Shown piece by piece: positions 28,562 to 34,500 of a stretch of DNA of 52,866 bases. The stretch is from Salisapilia sapeloensis CBS 127946. Its lineage: Eukaryota > Protista > Oomycota. Location of the stretch: the NCBI GenBank assembly GCA_023334545.1, contig JAADVB010000125.1:1-52866 (forward strand). Reading direction: 5' to 3'. A model generated the notes under the pieces. It worked only from the letters and a program-made list of their open reading frames with translations. It was not told the origin of the DNA and made no database searches. Positions within the stretch are counted from its first letter, which is position 1; each line of letters opens with the position of its first letter. Position numbers and translations under genes: made by a program.

Positions 28562-28858
28562 GTCTTAGCGTTGTTTTTCTTGTCTCTGGAGAAAGTCTGG
28601 AAGCTGGGTGCGCGGTCCGAGGCAAATTCGTAAATGAACTGAACGTCGTCGAGTGGCATGTGTCGATTCACAGTACATGAAGAAAGCGAAAAGAATAGCG
28701 AATATTTGCTAAAACAAAGCTTTTACGATGCTAATCCAAGTATCGAAACTTCAAGAACGTCGGTCTATCGAATCCACAAAAGTTGACATTCAAAACGCAA
28801 AAGTCAACAAACAAACTGCCCATAGGAACACAAAACACAAAAGCATCCAGGTAGAACG

Positions 28859-29419
28859 ATGGAGCAAATTGTGCAAATGCAAGATGATATTCACAAGCTC
28901 AAGAAGATGATGGACGCTGTCTTCGAGAAAATGTACTCCTCTAATACTCTACCGAAGTAGTTGTATGACAAGAGTTGTTGAATCGCGATGTGGTTGCTTG
29001 AATGGTAGTGAACAACACACATCCGACTCGCCATATAGTGCAGCAGACGCATACGGTATCCTTTTCTCAATCATACCTCCATATAGGTGCAGTATCATAA
29101 ATAGTATCTACAGGTGACAAAGATCGGATTGTCGAGATGCTCAACCGCCTCAGCTCCAAAGTACATCTTCTCAATAGCCTACTAGCTCCCTGCTTTCTAA
29201 CAGCCCACTTAGATGGCAGACGCAGACATGTCCAACCTAACGGCTGAGCCACTCAAAGACGCCACTGCAGCTGATATAGCTGTATGTATCTCTTAAATCC
29301 CCATGTTTCTATCATCCTAACACTCTCTCCAGGAGCTTAAACGCAAGATCGAAACGACTGAAACAGAACGACAGCACCTCCATCGTCGAGCCGGTGCGTC
29401 TTTCAAAGGTCTACAGTAA
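28859..29419 (+). CDS. Small 119-aa helical/coiled-coil protein, 5 exons (28859-28932, 28973-29055, 29114-29160, 29213-29281, 29333-29419)
   Basis: Four GT-AG introns (40, 58, 52, 51 nt; CTAAC branch-like motifs in the last two) give one continuous frame: MEQIVQMQDDIHKLKKMMDAVFEKIVVESR...GDKDRIVEMLNRLSSKMADAD...ELKRKIETTETERQHLHRRAGASFKGLQ. Confidence 0.72.
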
Positions 29420-29450
29420 GATACCCAAAGACAAATCCATTTTCGTTTTC

Positions 29451-31286
29451 TTATGCAAACGCAAACTCTTGACTCTCTGGCCAAATGTCTTGCGTCAGCT
29501 CCTGTTCTTCCTGCAGCTCCAGCGCTCTCGAAGCATTCGCAATCACATCCACCTTTTGCTTCTTCGGAGTCGGCTCTGCGTCACTGCTCTCCTGACTTCG
29601 CGAAATGGCTACTTGGGCACACTCTTCATCATACTCGGCTTGCAATTCTTCTGCCAGTTGATCCCAAATACCTTCTCGTTGCAGATAGAACTGCAAGTCT
29701 GCTTCGCTCTGGAACCAGTCTTCCCCCAGCACACTCTTACGTGTCGCGCCTGGCTTGAAGTAGTCGTATTCGAATCGACCTGGCTCATACCGCCATCCAC
29801 GTCGCACTAACATGTTCACAGCGATGCCGTTGGTCAATTGACGTGTCTGAGCTTCCACCAGACTAGCTGATCGCTTGCGTTGGACAGGTTCCTCCACCTT
29901 TTTCTCTATCTTGGCCTTGGGTTTCGTGCTTTTCACGTGTTTCTTGGCAGATTTAGGGGCAGGCTTAGATGCAGGTGTGTCCTGTCCAGACGCAGCGTCC
30001 TCTCTGGTAAAAGTAAACTCAGCAGGTTCATTCTTCATAGCTTCCTTCTTGACAGATTTCTTCTTGAGAGCTTCACGTCGTTTCTTATCGTCCAACCGAC
30101 GTTTAGTGCGTCCAAGATGCTTTTCAAATTCATCTGCTTCCATCTCATGGATCATATCGTCATGCTCTTGCTTGAGCTCTTCCCTCACGCGAGCCCAGAC
30201 TCCAGACTCTTTCAAGTAATTTTCCAACGCGACAGACGATTTAAAGTAGTTTTCACCTTCCTTTTGGTTGGACGTATCGTACGTCGGGGAAAAGTAGTCG
30301 TACTCGAACATACCTGGCTTGTGAGTCCATCCTTCTTCCTGTAGTTTATCATAGACGCGTCCGAATTTACATTCAAACGTTGGACCTTCGTACTTGAAGG
30401 TGGAAATAGCCACTTGATATGGATCCTCGTTATCTGTTTTCTTCGGTGCTTTCTTCTTCGCGTGGATCTTTTTATCCGCACTCGCTGTCTTGTATGGAGG
30501 CGTGATGAGGTCTTTTGTCGAAGCCGGAGATGGTGTATTAAAGATCTTCTTCCTTGCCTTCGACGTAGGTTTCTCTGTCTTTTTACTTAGTTTAGAAAAA
30601 TCGAGCTTCTGACGACCGTCAGCAGAGTCGCCGAGGTCAATGATGATCTTTTCATTCGCTAAACAACGACCGATGGTACACGCGACGCTCGTGAACATCG
30701 TTTCGTTCGGAATGAGTTGCGTAAATGGCGTATTCGGTTGGACAAACACTGTTTCCTGACCGAGCGCCATGGACGTCCAGTGAAAGTATTTTTGAGCAAT
30801 GTGCCATAGTCGATCCCACACTTGACGATCCTTTTCCTCTTGCTCCATCGCTTTCGAAGGATGCTTCGAAGCATCTTCCGCTGAAGTATAGAGGAATTTC
30901 CAACATGCATGCTCCTTACTTTCAAAGGTATTAATGTTCGGACGCAAGTCTTGGAACGTAGTGCCTGGCATGAGGCAGTAGGTAGCATCTGGACTCTCTA
31001 ACAAGTTCCATCCGCGGTTCTGAAGGACTTCCCAGATCAAGTCAAAGGATGTTTCGAATCTCTTTTTCGCCGATAAAGGACCTTCCGGAGACGATTGCAC
31101 CGATGTATTCTCCTTTTCTACCTCCTTTTCCCCTCCCTCTTCTACCACTGGTTCCTCTGCTTCATACTCGACGACTTGTGTGTTGGATAGCTGAATGTCA
31201 TCCATGGCATCCGCTCCAGATGAGACGAAGGCATCTGGATTAAAGTCAATATGTTGTTCAGACGATGGAGTATCTATCTCTGTCAT
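29451..31286 (-). CDS. Uncharacterised 611-aa protein with four GW repeats (possibly MBD/TAM-fold-like)
   Basis: Intact ORF; first ATG at 31286 (the track start at 31397 is TTG). Repeats begin IWEVLQNRGW, LWHIAQKYFHW, VYDKLQEEGW and AVNMLVRRGW, separated by Lys-rich linkers. Confidence 0.85.
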   Translation of the reverse strand: MTEIDTPSSEQHIDFNPDAFVSSGADAMDDIQLSNTQVVEYEAEEPVVEEGGEKEVEKENTSVQSSPEGPLSAKKRFETSFDLIWEVLQNRGWNLLESPDATYCLMPGTTFQDLRPNINTFESKEHACWKFLYTSAEDASKHPSKAMEQEEKDRQVWDRLWHIAQKYFHWTSMALGQETVFVQPNTPFTQLIPNETMFTSVACTIGRCLANEKIIIDLGDSADGRQKLDFSKLSKKTEKPTSKARKKIFNTPSPASTKDLITPPYKTASADKKIHAKKKAPKKTDNEDPYQVAISTFKYEGPTFECKFGRVYDKLQEEGWTHKPGMFEYDYFSPTYDTSNQKEGENYFKSSVALENYLKESGVWARVREELKQEHDDMIHEMEADEFEKHLGRTKRRLDDKKRREALKKKSVKKEAMKNEPAEFTFTREDAASGQDTPASKPAPKSAKKHVKSTKPKAKIEKKVEEPVQRKRSASLVEAQTRQLTNGIAVNMLVRRGWRYEPGRFEYDYFKPGATRKSVLGEDWFQSEADLQFYLQREGIWDQLAEELQAEYDEECAQVAISRSQESSDAEPTPKKQKVDVIANASRALELQEEQELTQDIWPESQEFAFA

Positions 31287-31488
31287 ATTCCCTACTCTTT
31301 CTACACCTCCAAGTACGAGTACACTCGATGTACTCAGCTCTAGAAAATTTAAATGGTGCTCCTCGCGCTTTTTGTCCGCTTTTGTCGTTCCCACCAAACG
31401 ATATGATTCGTAGATATTCTAAAACGTAGAATAAGAGTGGTAGAAATACAGGATAAGAAATGTAACTGATATTAAAAGTGATAAGCTC

Positions 31489-31551: not shown

Positions 31552-34500
31552 ATGGATGGACCATTGGGTGTATACTGGGTGCGTCTAGAGAATCAAAAGA
31601 TGCCGGTCCCTTGGCCGGCTTGTGTCTATCATAGCTATGACGCTGCGAGACGACATGGACATGACGTCTCGGTCTTCTATATGAACAAACCGGCGCTCGA
31701 ACCCGAAGATCGCGTCGTCTTCTTCTTCGGTCTCGATCCCCTTCACTTGAACAAGGACGATTCGATCAGTCCTAAAAAACAGCTTCTAAGCGCCCACCTC
31801 ACTTCGATCCATAAAACACCCTTCGAAGGCTCGTCGACCTTGCGGTCGATCGCCAAGACCATGGGCTTGTCTCGTCCGAACTTGGCGATGGCTGAGGACG
31901 ATGTTGAGCTTGAAGAAGCATGCAGACAAGCGAGTGACTTTTTACGACTGGAGAGTGATGACGCTGCAAGGGAATTCTTCTCGGCCTTAATGCTCCATTC
32001 GATTAATCAAGTGGAGGAGAATGCGTCTCAAGCCAGTGAAGAAGAGGCCAAGGAAGACGAAGAGCACACAAACGAAAATACAGAGCTATCTAGTCAGAAG
32101 ACTCAGCCGATCGAGACTGCATCAGCTCCAGCCTCTGAACCCACCGGTGGATTATCTATCCACATTCAAGACGAATGCTGGAAGAAGATGCAAGACGCTG
32201 GATGGAACACGATGGTGCTTTCTGGACAAGAGTTATTTAAAAAGCCTGGCGTCGGTTTTGGAAGCATGCAGCCTGGTATTAATATCTTCGACAACCTAAT
32301 GGACGCCTGCGCCATCTTTGTCTGTGAGCAACTGCAGAGCGAAAACGCTGATCCAGACCTCGTGTCCATGTTCTGGACGATGCTAGAGCAACAAGGATGG
32401 CAGACGATGTTTCTAAGCGGATCCCCTGTCTACGCCATGCCGAAAGTTAGCTTCGTGACCATGTTTCCTGATGTCAATCTCTTTAAAACGAAGCTAGAAG
32501 CCATCTCTAAGTACTTCAACAACAATGGTATGCTCCAAAGTAAACAGAAAGCAGTCGCCAAACCGAAACCCAAGTCTAAGTCGTCTTCAAATCTGTTTAA
32601 AAAGCCAAAAGAGCATGAAAGGAAAGAACCAACGTATCACCCAAGAGCTAGATCGACGAACAAACGCACGACAAATGTTCCGCATCGATATGACACGGGT
32701 GAAAAGCCCCGATCGAAACGTTCAACGGACGATTTAAAGCCTGGCGTGTTGGAAAAAGCTTTATTGGATCAAGGATGGTTCTATAAAGCTGGCAGCGTGG
32801 GTGGATCCTACACATACTACCGCCCGCACTGCAAAGGTGTCGACATCGAACGTCTGCAGTTCGGTCGTGATTACTACAGTAACCTCGAAGCAGTTGAGAT
32901 GGCTCTAAAAGCCAGTGGCGAGTACTATCCGCTAAAGGAAAAAGCACGAGCACCAATCACTACCACTGTGAAAGCATCTAAACCACAGCCAAAGAAAGTT
33001 GTACGAAAGCCCAAGGCTGAAACGAAGAAGCGAAAGATTAGCGAATCGGAGTTTGAGGATGAAGCAGACTGTATGGAATCGGAAGAGATGGTCACTCCGG
33101 AACCAAAAGAGCGTTTCACGAAGAAACGTAAGGCTTTATCTAACATCTCCAACGTCCGCGACGACATCTCTCCTGATACGGAGAAACCAAAGACACCTTC
33201 TATTCTGAAGAAACCAGCTCCATCTCGAAGTATCGCGACGAACTTTTCTCCAGACGTACATGACACACAACCACTCGAATCGACGGATTTAAACCAACTA
33301 CTAAAAGACGTGATGCCGAGACTGTCGACTGGTTTCATCCCGTCAGCATTTAATTATCGCAAGCAAGAGTGGAGTCAAATCGAAACGTTCCTTCGAGACT
33401 GTTTCCGACACACACAAGGTGCGAGTTTATACCTCTCTGGCGCTCCTGGGAGTGGTAAATCCGCGCTACTTTCGTCGGAAATGAATAATATCAAGGACAT
33501 GTACTATAACGAGACGAAAGACCGATCGGACGTGCCTACCTTTAAGAGTCTACACGTCAACGCCGTGACTTTGAAAGGTACATCTGCTCTATTTCAAACA
33601 GCAGCGAAAGAGCTGACGGGAGACACCTACACGTCTGGCGAGAAAGCATTGGAAGCGTTGGAACGAGCGACAGACATACAGTCGAGTAACGCTTCCATGC
33701 TGCTGTTGGTCATTGATGAAATCGACTTTTTATTGACACACAAGACGTGGGAAGGAGACTTGCTGCGTCTCTTTGAACTCGCACATCGACGCAACCATAG
33801 CCTCCTACTCGTTGGTGTCGCAAATCAAGTAGATTTCGCTGAAAGACATCTCGCGAGCTTACGCAAGCAGATGCCTCAATGCTCTCCTGCAACCGTTGTC
33901 TTCACTCCGTACTCGTTCATGTCGATCCAGAACATCTTGATCGATCGATTAGGCGGACGATCGGCGGCACAGAGACTGCTGGACATGAATGGACTAGCTT
34001 TCCTCGCTCGAAAAGTCTGCTCGACATCTGGAGACGTTCGACTTGCTCTCGACATTTGCCGCCGACTCTTGTCCAACGTCAATCAAGATAAGGAGAATGC
34101 GTTGAAGAAGAAAGGCCCGGTGGTTGGATTGAGTAAAGTGATTTCTGTCGTGAAACAGAGTCTGGATGCAGGTAGCTCGCATGTTGTCGAGTCCTTGCCT
34201 CGGAATCTAAAGCTTGTGCTTCTGGCATGCACTCGAGCGATGACGAGTGGCGGGAAAGATGATTCTGCGCGGTTGATTCCGACGAATGCATTGTACTCGA
34301 CGTATTCGGAGAATTTAGGCTCAGCAGGTGTCTCGAAGCGCATGAGTTCGCGAGAGTTTGCACAGAGCTTAGAGACGTTGGCGTCGAATGGGTTGCTTAG
34401 CTACAATGTAAAGAAGGGAGATACGGTCAAGCTGCTTTTCCGAACGAGTGATGTGCTGCAGACCTTGAGACGAGATGAGTTTATTGCAAGAGTCATGTAG
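31552..34500 (+). CDS. CDC6: Cell division control protein 6 (replication-licensing AAA+ ATPase) with extended N-terminus (PWWP-like domain plus three GW repeats), 982 aa
   Basis: SLYLSGAPGSGKS (Walker A, 33439-33462), LLLVIDEIDFLL (Walker B), LVGVANQVD, VFTPYS, FLARKVCSTSGDVRLALDICRR and a C-terminal winged-helix-like region. These match Cdc6 (SLYLSGAPGTGKT, ARKVSAVSGDVRKALDVCRR) better than Orc1. Confidence 0.9.
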   Translation: MDGPLGVYWVRLENQKMPVPWPACVYHSYDAARRHGHDVSVFYMNKPALEPEDRVVFFFGLDPLHLNKDDSISPKKQLLSAHLTSIHKTPFEGSSTLRSIAKTMGLSRPNLAMAEDDVELEEACRQASDFLRLESDDAAREFFSALMLHSINQVEENASQASEEEAKEDEEHTNENTELSSQKTQPIETASAPASEPTGGLSIHIQDECWKKMQDAGWNTMVLSGQELFKKPGVGFGSMQPGINIFDNLMDACAIFVCEQLQSENADPDLVSMFWTMLEQQGWQTMFLSGSPVYAMPKVSFVTMFPDVNLFKTKLEAISKYFNNNGMLQSKQKAVAKPKPKSKSSSNLFKKPKEHERKEPTYHPRARSTNKRTTNVPHRYDTGEKPRSKRSTDDLKPGVLEKALLDQGWFYKAGSVGGSYTYYRPHCKGVDIERLQFGRDYYSNLEAVEMALKASGEYYPLKEKARAPITTTVKASKPQPKKVVRKPKAETKKRKISESEFEDEADCMESEEMVTPEPKERFTKKRKALSNISNVRDDISPDTEKPKTPSILKKPAPSRSIATNFSPDVHDTQPLESTDLNQLLKDVMPRLSTGFIPSAFNYRKQEWSQIETFLRDCFRHTQGASLYLSGAPGSGKSALLSSEMNNIKDMYYNETKDRSDVPTFKSLHVNAVTLKGTSALFQTAAKELTGDTYTSGEKALEALERATDIQSSNASMLLLVIDEIDFLLTHKTWEGDLLRLFELAHRRNHSLLLVGVANQVDFAERHLASLRKQMPQCSPATVVFTPYSFMSIQNILIDRLGGRSAAQRLLDMNGLAFLARKVCSTSGDVRLALDICRRLLSNVNQDKENALKKKGPVVGLSKVISVVKQSLDAGSSHVVESLPRNLKLVLLACTRAMTSGGKDDSARLIPTNALYSTYSENLGSAGVSKRMSSREFAQSLETLASNGLLSYNVKKGDTVKLLFRTSDVLQTLRRDEFIARVM

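Follow-up and report, generated by a model that had tools for sequence, protein, structure and literature searches.

We describe here a family of GW (glycine–tryptophan) repeats encoded by two adjacent genes of the oomycete Salisapilia sapeloensis CBS 127946: gene A, which carries four repeats and basic linkers with no ATPase domain, and its neighbour gene B, which encodes a Cdc6/Orc1-family AAA+ protein. Both lie on contig JAADVB010000125.1 (GenBank assembly GCA_023334545.1), the full 52,866 nucleotides of which we refer to as the window. The explanation that best accommodates our data, and to which we give a probability of roughly 0.55, is that the repeats form an array of remodelled DUF7650 modules, related to the methyl-CpG-binding domain (MBD), which targets origin-licensing proteins to chromatin. 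Taken by itself, the module is probably a distant and remodelled relative of the MBD without the residues that read methyl-cytosine.

The window contains seven repeats, A1–A4 in gene A and B1–B3 in gene B (Table 1); a search for the G-W pair alone returns three clear copies in the open reading frame (ORF) of each gene. Two types can be told apart: type I (A1, A2, B1 and B2), with the pattern W..L...GW.TM......Y.MPG..F..F.PN..IF.SK..A, and type II (A3, A4 and B3), with the pattern FG.....L..RGW...PG.FEYDYFKP.........DYF.S...LE.YL..SGLW. BLASTP aligns A3 with A4 at 40% identity over 67 amino acids (E 7.8e-18) and B1 with B2 at E 2.7e-11, so that repetition in the products of both genes is, as judged from their sequences, far above chance; the two types also align with each other when compared as profiles (hhalign probability 92.5%, P 4.8e-7, 60 collinear columns without a gap). 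The preliminary description of this DNA had placed GW repeats at 29640–31037, a span that does cover the four copies of gene A, and had remarked on a missing RKSG loop and an insert of about ten residues between the proline and the following glycine. Both remarks are borne out by A3 (...KLQEEGWTHKPGMFEYDYFSPTYDTSNQKEGENYFKSSVALENYLKESG...), which has no RKSG-type loop and has nine residues from P to G. A match of A2 to the Ig-like domain of CFAP74 (E 0.005–0.1; 13–17 bits against a cut-off of 28) conflicts with the predicted fold and was set aside.

AlphaFold2 models of A3 and A1 were built from alignments containing repeats only. The A3 model (predicted local distance difference test, pLDDT, 90.8; predicted template-modelling score, pTM, 0.75) comprises alpha(4–13), beta(17–20), beta(25–28), a loop with a short 3-10 turn, beta(43–44), alpha(47–57) and alpha(59–69); the A1 model (pLDDT 92.3) comprises alpha(3–13), beta(17–20), beta(25–28), beta(43–44) and alpha(47–63). 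The secondary-structure elements follow in the same order and at the same positions in both, and the repeat is therefore predicted to be an autonomous alpha-beta-beta-beta-alpha domain, each copy being read as an independently folding module of ~60–65 residues. Working from the N-terminus, the modelled layout is alpha1 (W..L), the G-W turn, a beta1–beta2 hairpin, the proline with a loop of 9–13 residues, beta3 (..F.S) and alpha2 (...L..YL). As a separate observation, the catalytic C-terminal domain of tRNA intron endonuclease gives weak Pfam matches in six of 150 family repeats (best E 2e-4), and endonuclease chains also occur among the weak Foldseek rows for the repeat models.

A profile of 15 repeats, searched against 1.84 billion proteins, retrieves 368 representative proteins at E<=1e-3, 55 of them at E<=1e-30, with up to 18 matched stretches per protein; local re-scanning of the listed matches together with P0002 gives 522 repeats in 151 proteins. 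By profile comparison the GW repeats belong to the Pfam family DUF7650 (PF24662), a domain of unknown function: this profile matches 15 of 67 whole family proteins at E<=1e-3, the best of them at E 2.7e-12, and 31 of 150 repeats taken singly, and the A3 model superposes on a plant DUF7650/DUF7952 cluster, all of whose members (100%) carry DUF7650, with a template-modelling (TM) score of 0.64. The window's own repeats fall below the DUF7650 cut-off, B2 alone giving a match (E 0.12), and it is the repeat profile that links them to the family. DUF7650 occurs in stramenopiles, a dinoflagellate and plants; named members of the repeat family include the oomycetes Lagenidium, Thraustotheca, Pythium, Aphanomyces and Phytophthora boehmeriae, the ochrophyte Chrysoparadoxa, the thraustochytrid Hondaea and the dinoflagellate Durusdinium. 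A literature search found no paper naming DUF7650, DUF7952 or DUF7028 (a further Pfam family, discussed below), and searches on oomycete ORC (origin recognition complex)/Cdc6 and on TAM/MBD in stramenopiles found nothing about the GW module. Word-index homologue searches gave two matches and were blank for residues 344–405 and for alignment A4 (see below), blanks that are uninformative given the length window and word index used. The rows returned by profile searches of the PDB (Prp40 WW, E 0.69; the HyaE N-terminus, E 0.02; clostridial cell-wall-binding repeats; mL75) all have E>=0.02, cover the helix-GW or hairpin part only, and were discarded as being at chance level.

Within the family we also see a lysine-rich subfamily, with the pattern W..VW..M..SGWTWK.GSGLMTDYYYIKPGCK.KGG..G.DYF...EDV..FA..NYGW (P0029, P0035, P0039, P0043, P0044, P0048, P0051 and P0057; P0029 is a JGI/IMG metagenome protein). 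Its members form arrays of 4–7 in proteins with no other recognised domain; of the MBD motif D-x-Y-Y they retain D and Y, and their S-G-L loop recalls the K-S-G-L of MBDs.

The GW repeat shares with the MBD (PF01429), and with the TAM domain of BAZ2A/BAZ2B, the order and spacing of its core: the G-W, Y-Y-x-x-P and F-x-S strands and the L..YL helix. It differs in having an extra N-terminal helix, a deletion of 7–9 residues in the L1 loop and an insert of 9–13 residues after the proline; it is moreover acidic rather than basic, lacks the arginine fingers, stands in arrays and has no Pfam MBD match. For a statistical comparison, 150 diverse repeats were assembled without reference to MBD (alignment A4, not to be confused with the repeat of that name) and aligned with an MBD set (A8) obtained by scanning metagenome contigs with a degenerate DNA pattern for Y-Y-x-S-P-x-G-K-K-F-R-S. 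All ten distinct sequences in the latter pass PF01429, at 23–84 bits, their profile being biased by this selection towards the MBD2/3-like G-K-K-F-R-S type; none of the ten looks human, the MBD2/3-like loci among them departing from human MBD2 and MBD3 at several sites. Compared by hhalign, the two sets align with a probability of 66.3% (P 5.5e-5, score 23.9), and with mact set to 0.01 they can be aligned collinearly over 53 columns, with GW on GW, 7–9 residues of the R-K-S-G-x-x-A-G loop deleted and nine inserted after the proline. None of 200 column-shuffled MBD profiles reaches this score (8.4 +/- 1.9, maximum 16.3), nor does the reversed profile (12.5) or any of 28 windows of a real but unrelated profile, that of the Cdc6 AAA+/winged helix (8.4 +/- 1.6, maximum 14.2).

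Several further lines of evidence, partly independent of one another, are concordant with this result. In language-model features computed separately for the repeats A4 and A1, MBD clusters are the nearest named families (0.75–0.80) and nine of the ten best named matches agree on MBD, scores that we treat as leads only. In structural alignments, A3 superposes on MBD4 (Z 3.0; root-mean-square deviation, rmsd, 2.7 A over 45 residues; 27% identity), MBD2 (Z 2.3–2.4; 26–31%), MeCP2 (Z 2.2; rmsd 2.8–3.0 A over 45 residues; 29%) and AtMBD6 (Z 2.6; rmsd 2.3 A over 39 residues; 20%), and A1 on AtMBD6 (Z 3.4; rmsd 1.9 A over 39 residues; 20%); the MBD core as a whole fits with an rmsd of 1.9–3.0 A over 39–46 residues. 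It is by identity (20–31%) and not by Z that MBD chains are distinguished here, all other folds giving 0–16%. The model likewise fits an atlas cluster, 25% of whose members have an MBD, with a TM score of 0.55 and an rmsd of 2.4 A over 52 residues, and the weak Foldseek rows for A3 are rich in the TAM domains of BAZ2A/B, MeCP2, MBD2 and MBD3.

A possible intermediate is provided by DUF7028 (PF22970), a family of unknown function that looks like an MBD-type domain with an N-terminal extension. At profile positions 38–83 it matches true MBDs (loci L003, L006, L010 and L012; E 3e-5 to 7e-4), and it matches the GW protein P0115 at 46.2 bits (cut-off 27), the best stretch, 594–625, lying within the GW repeat at 596–660; since it matches both true MBDs and GW repeats, we place DUF7028 between the two families, the seven repeats of the window themselves giving no DUF7028 match. 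GW proteins, Cdc6-like and others, also contain repeats that lack the insert and have MBD spacing (P0052:762–818, which reads W..L...GW...LYCSPSGDIF; P0062:543–600; P0131:176–236; P0115:186–246; P0053:348–406). Aligned as a group with the GW profile, these give a probability of 96.9% (P 1.9e-10) over 57 columns, with a gap at the insert and nowhere else; two of them touch DUF7028 (E 0.015–0.03). Their 84.5% probability against MBD is a figure biased upwards, the sequences having been found with an MBD model, and we rejected them as a firm bridge.

A number of results weigh against an MBD-related array, and we collect them here. The Pfam MBD profile matches none of the seven window repeats and none of 43 family repeats at E<=10, nor does it appear among the 25 of 29 families listed for 150 family repeats at E<=1; in the other direction, four repeat profiles, run against the whole set of PDB sequences, found no MBD/TAM chain at E<=10. 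Split into sub-profiles, the hhalign probability against MBD drops to 11% for type II, 8% for the lysine-rich subfamily and 0.4% for type I (range 0.4–13%), and across the ~20,000 families of a library the P of 5.5e-5 corresponds to an E of ~1, MBD having been chosen by eye among many families. The insert-less repeats score 31.9 against MBD in a selection-matched control whose 100 shuffles give 15.7 +/- 5.6 with a maximum, 31.2, that nearly equals the real value. Structurally, no MBD is found among the best 50 Foldseek rows for A1, and double-stranded RNA-binding domain (dsRBD) and RecA C-terminal folds score as well as MBD or better. The window repeats, finally, carry a net charge of -7 to +2 (family mean 0.0 per 100 residues; a charge count, not a surface calculation), and we found no polar surface residue that is conserved; W, G, P, F, Y and L, which hold the invariant positions, are most simply read as residues of the core.

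The by-eye resemblance to MBD/TAM set out in the preliminary description thus stands as a remote one, its layout being reproduced by hhalign, but it is accompanied by no match between profile and single sequence in either direction and does not extend to type I taken alone. The comparison of single repeats with MBD structures that it had called for is similarly divided: MBDs superpose with 20–31% identity, but Foldseek returns nothing at E<=1e-3 for either model and dsRBD scores are equal or better. An alternative is that the repeat has a dsRBD-like (alpha-beta-beta-beta-alpha; dsRBD/HicA-type) fold with no MBD ancestry, binding double-stranded nucleic acid through backbone contacts, its GW...YY.P...F.S...L..YL pattern having arisen by convergence. 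The order of elements in our models is exactly that of the dsRBD, the Foldseek rows include HicA, which also gives weak matches in Pfam and PDB searches (E 0.14–0.6), and the lack of MBD signal in type I, by hhalign and in the best Foldseek rows, is as such an origin would have it. We nevertheless consider it unlikely: dsRBD superpositions have 0–14% identity as against the values given above for MBD, the hhalign score to MBD exceeds that of every control, and DUF7028 bridges to MBD and not to dsRBD. The Pfam dsrm profile, too, matches none of the seven window or 43 family repeats and is not among the 25 of 29 families listed for the 150 repeats (profile-to-sequence comparison only). None of structural identity, language-model neighbours or the DUF7028 bridge favours dsRBD at the level of sequence, and from these, together with the hhalign score that stands well clear of its controls, we infer, with somewhat more confidence than we attach to the explanation as a whole, that the GW repeat is remotely homologous to the MBD/TAM superfamily.

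As to the ligand, the preliminary description had suggested that it may not be 5-methylcytosine in CpG (5mCpG), and the residues present agree. The first arginine finger of the MBD lies in the L1 loop that is deleted in the repeat–MBD alignment; the position of the second, after the conserved F, shows no conservation across the family, the seven window repeats having K, Q, S, E, T, D and K there; and the D-x-Y pair becomes E-Y-D in type II repeats. Because both fingers are absent and the repeats are acidic, canonical 5mCpG reading by the window repeats is excluded on the basis of their composition, and DNA binding in the manner of an MBD is for the same reasons disfavoured. The bolder idea of the preliminary description, that the repeat reads a base modification other than 5mCpG, such as N6-methyladenine (6mA), through which origin licensing would be coupled to a mark on DNA, draws on the remote MBD relationship, on the fusions to ORC5 and Cdc6/Orc1-like proteins described below, and on Phytophthora species, for which two reports describe 6mA and state that 5-methylcytosine was not identified (PMC6211444, PMC11261156). 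How far those data carry over has to be viewed in the light of the products of genes A and B sharing only 33–36% identity with each of their orthologues from other oomycetes, those of Phytophthora boehmeriae among them (P0016-P0028, P0009-P0037). The deleted L1 loop, the unconserved second finger, the acidity of the window repeats and the presence of the family in plants and dinoflagellates, whose methylation systems differ, all speak against such reading, which we regard as highly improbable.

A rather less remote, though still doubtful, alternative is that the repeat, irrespective of its ancestry, is a protein–protein interaction module, binding for example a histone or a licensing factor, with any affinity for DNA coming from the lysine-rich linkers only. 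The distribution of charge would suit this well, the linkers of the window carrying +9 to +12 beside the near-neutral to acidic repeats, as would the restriction of conserved positions to hydrophobic or structural residues and the retention, in gene A orthologues, of a short linear motif at the C-terminus, of a kind usual in docking peptides. Set against these are the subfamily GWTWK.GSGLMTDYYYIKPG.K.KGG, which is lysine-rich inside the domain itself, and the DNA-associated nature of the partners that are seen (ORC subunits, SAP and PCC domains).

The domains with which the repeats are combined suggest the role in licensing that forms part of our preferred explanation, an MBD-related array that brings licensing proteins to chromatin. 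About 28 of the 151 family proteins are Cdc6/Orc1-like, with a Walker A motif of that type following four (sometimes 3–7) repeats. In a further five (P0124, P0042, P0030, P0045 and P0033) ORC5_C (E 1e-24 to 1e-34) and AAA_16 stand behind 2–12 repeats, and three of these, P0030 (Durusdinium trenchii, 2443 aa), P0124 (Hondaea fermentalgiana) and P0042, are named in the database as ORC subunit 5; an appendage of this kind on ORC5 has, to our knowledge, not been described before, and a literature search for one found none. Among the 67 whole proteins scanned, SAP and PCC domains occur in one protein each, and a cluster of Tudor/Agenet proteins contains a domain of the repeat's shape (TM 0.72); most remaining members have no recognised domain. 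Origin choice outside yeasts and animals is largely unknown, and ORC subunits usually gain lineage-specific chromatin-binding appendages, such as the AT-hook array of fission-yeast Orc4, the BAH domain of animal and yeast Orc1 and the PHD of plant ORC1. Like these, the GW arrays are N-terminal, lineage-restricted and non-catalytic additions to a licensing AAA+ subunit, in this case Cdc6/Orc1-like proteins and ORC5, and are often multicopy; they differ in fold and in having an ATPase-less paralogue besides. We read them as a lineage-specific chromatin-targeting array for origin licensing.

We infer the following course of events and mode of action. An MBD/TAM-type domain would have gained an N-terminal helix, lost the L1 loop with its first arginine finger and acquired an insert between beta2 and beta3. 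The resulting module would have been deployed in arrays of 2 to 18 copies, typically N-terminal on origin-licensing AAA+ proteins: Cdc6/Orc1-like in oomycetes and ORC5 in other lineages. Such an array, together with its lysine-rich linkers, may provide a multivalent attachment of low affinity to a feature of chromatin, either DNA or the nucleosome, and in this way target or retain the licensing factor, a role that can be likened to that of the fission-yeast Orc4 AT-hook array or the animal ORC1 BAH domain. The product of gene A, with four modules, no ATPase and a C-terminal motif of docking type, could then compete for the same sites or serve there as an adaptor. A stronger proposal, that the arrays are the origin-specifying element of ORC/Cdc6 in stramenopiles and dinoflagellates, reading a DNA modification or sequence feature (e.g. 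6mA-marked or AT-rich) with the ATPase-less paralogue competing as a licensing regulator, is in our view a long shot. The module nonetheless offers a concrete, testable candidate for an origin-targeting element in oomycetes, thraustochytrids and a dinoflagellate, groups that include crop and fish pathogens and coral symbionts; DUF7650 and DUF7028 would gain a probable place beside the MBD/TAM superfamily; and, if the relationship is true, it would add another MBD-type scaffold that has lost methyl-cytosine reading.

Table 1. Positions in the window of genes A and B, their GW repeats and the C-terminal motif of gene A
Feature	Positions	Strand	Basis
Gene A coding sequence, first ATG to stop, 611 aa	29451..31286	minus	ORF and unspliced transcript coverage
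C-terminal short motif of gene A (LTQDIWPESQEFAFA)	29454..29498	minus	C-termini of 12 orthologues compared
A4, type II, ORF residues 520-592	29622..29840	minus	BLASTP to A3 and B3, alignment
A3, type II, ORF residues 342-412, stretch quoted in the preliminary description	30162..30374	minus	AlphaFold model, BLASTP, hhalign
A2, type I with HW instead of GW, ORF residues 188-252	30642..30836	minus	Aligns with all other repeats; conserved in orthologue
A1, type I, ORF residues 115-178	30864..31055	minus	AlphaFold model; BLASTP to B1 E 4.5e-9
Gene B, Cdc6/Orc1-family AAA+ protein, three GW repeats ahead of the ATPase	31552..34500	plus	Pfam and PDB matches
B1, type I, gene B residues 203-268	32158..32355	plus	BLASTP, alignment
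B2, type I, gene B residues 268-335	32353..32556	plus	BLASTP; weak Pfam DUF7650 match E 0.12
B3, type II, gene B residues 394-465	32731..32946	plus	BLASTP to A4 E 5e-5

Gene A lies within an ORF of 648 codons that begins with TTG (29451–31397, minus strand) and contains the repeat strings quoted in the preliminary description; transcript contigs place its start codon at the ATG at 31286 (ORF residue 38), with the 5' end of the mRNA ~113 nt upstream. Contigs from two public runs are gap-free and unspliced from 29333 to 31399 or 31370, and the same contigs contain four GT..AG joints in the neighbouring plus-strand gene (28815–29333); given these spliced joints the contigs derive from RNA, and the unspliced coverage of 29333–31399 therefore means that gene A is expressed and intronless. 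The whole protein matches no Pfam family above cut-off and gives nothing useful in a search of the PDB. Orthologues are found in many oomycetes at 33–35% identity, with at least 11 ATPase-less examples among the family proteins examined. In one such orthologue, from another oomycete (L001:2933-5158:-; 32% identity), the conserved parts are the four repeats and the extreme C-terminus, the lysine-rich linkers having diverged. The C-terminal motif is nearly invariant among oomycete orthologues (LTNDIWxNSHxFxF; here LTQDIWPESQEFAFA) and looks like a docking peptide.

The product of gene B matches Pfam AAA_22, AAA_16 and AAA, with Cdc6_C slightly below its cut-off (22.6 versus 25.1 bits); the nearest solved proteins are human CDC6 (E 6.3e-32) and ORC1 (E 2.3e-27), and identity to a Phytophthora boehmeriae protein is 36%. 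Genes A and B are divergently transcribed, the gene B transcript contig beginning at ~31458, and the 5' ends of the contigs of the two genes lie ~60 bp apart (31399–31458). The same head-to-head pairing is seen in the L001 oomycete, whose gene A orthologue on the minus strand faces a Cdc6-like gene on the plus strand; the intervening segment in the window, 31399–31458, has the appearance of a very compact bidirectional promoter, in an arrangement that is kept in L001. By these identities the source is a divergent oomycete; its DNA has a G+C content of ~44%.

In two family proteins, P0063 (Aphanomyces stellatus) and P0084, GW repeats occur together with a copia-type gag fragment and an NTPase of the STAND/AAA_16 or NPHP3_N type; these proteins may be either real fusions or merged gene models. 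Converging on gene A from the other side is a plus-strand gene of small exons (28815–29419), confirmed by spliced transcript contigs, with GT..AG introns of 51–76 nt (28932–29009, 29054–29113, 29160–29213 and 29281–29333); since the assemblies merge the two transcripts, the 3' ends of this gene and gene A overlap or abut.

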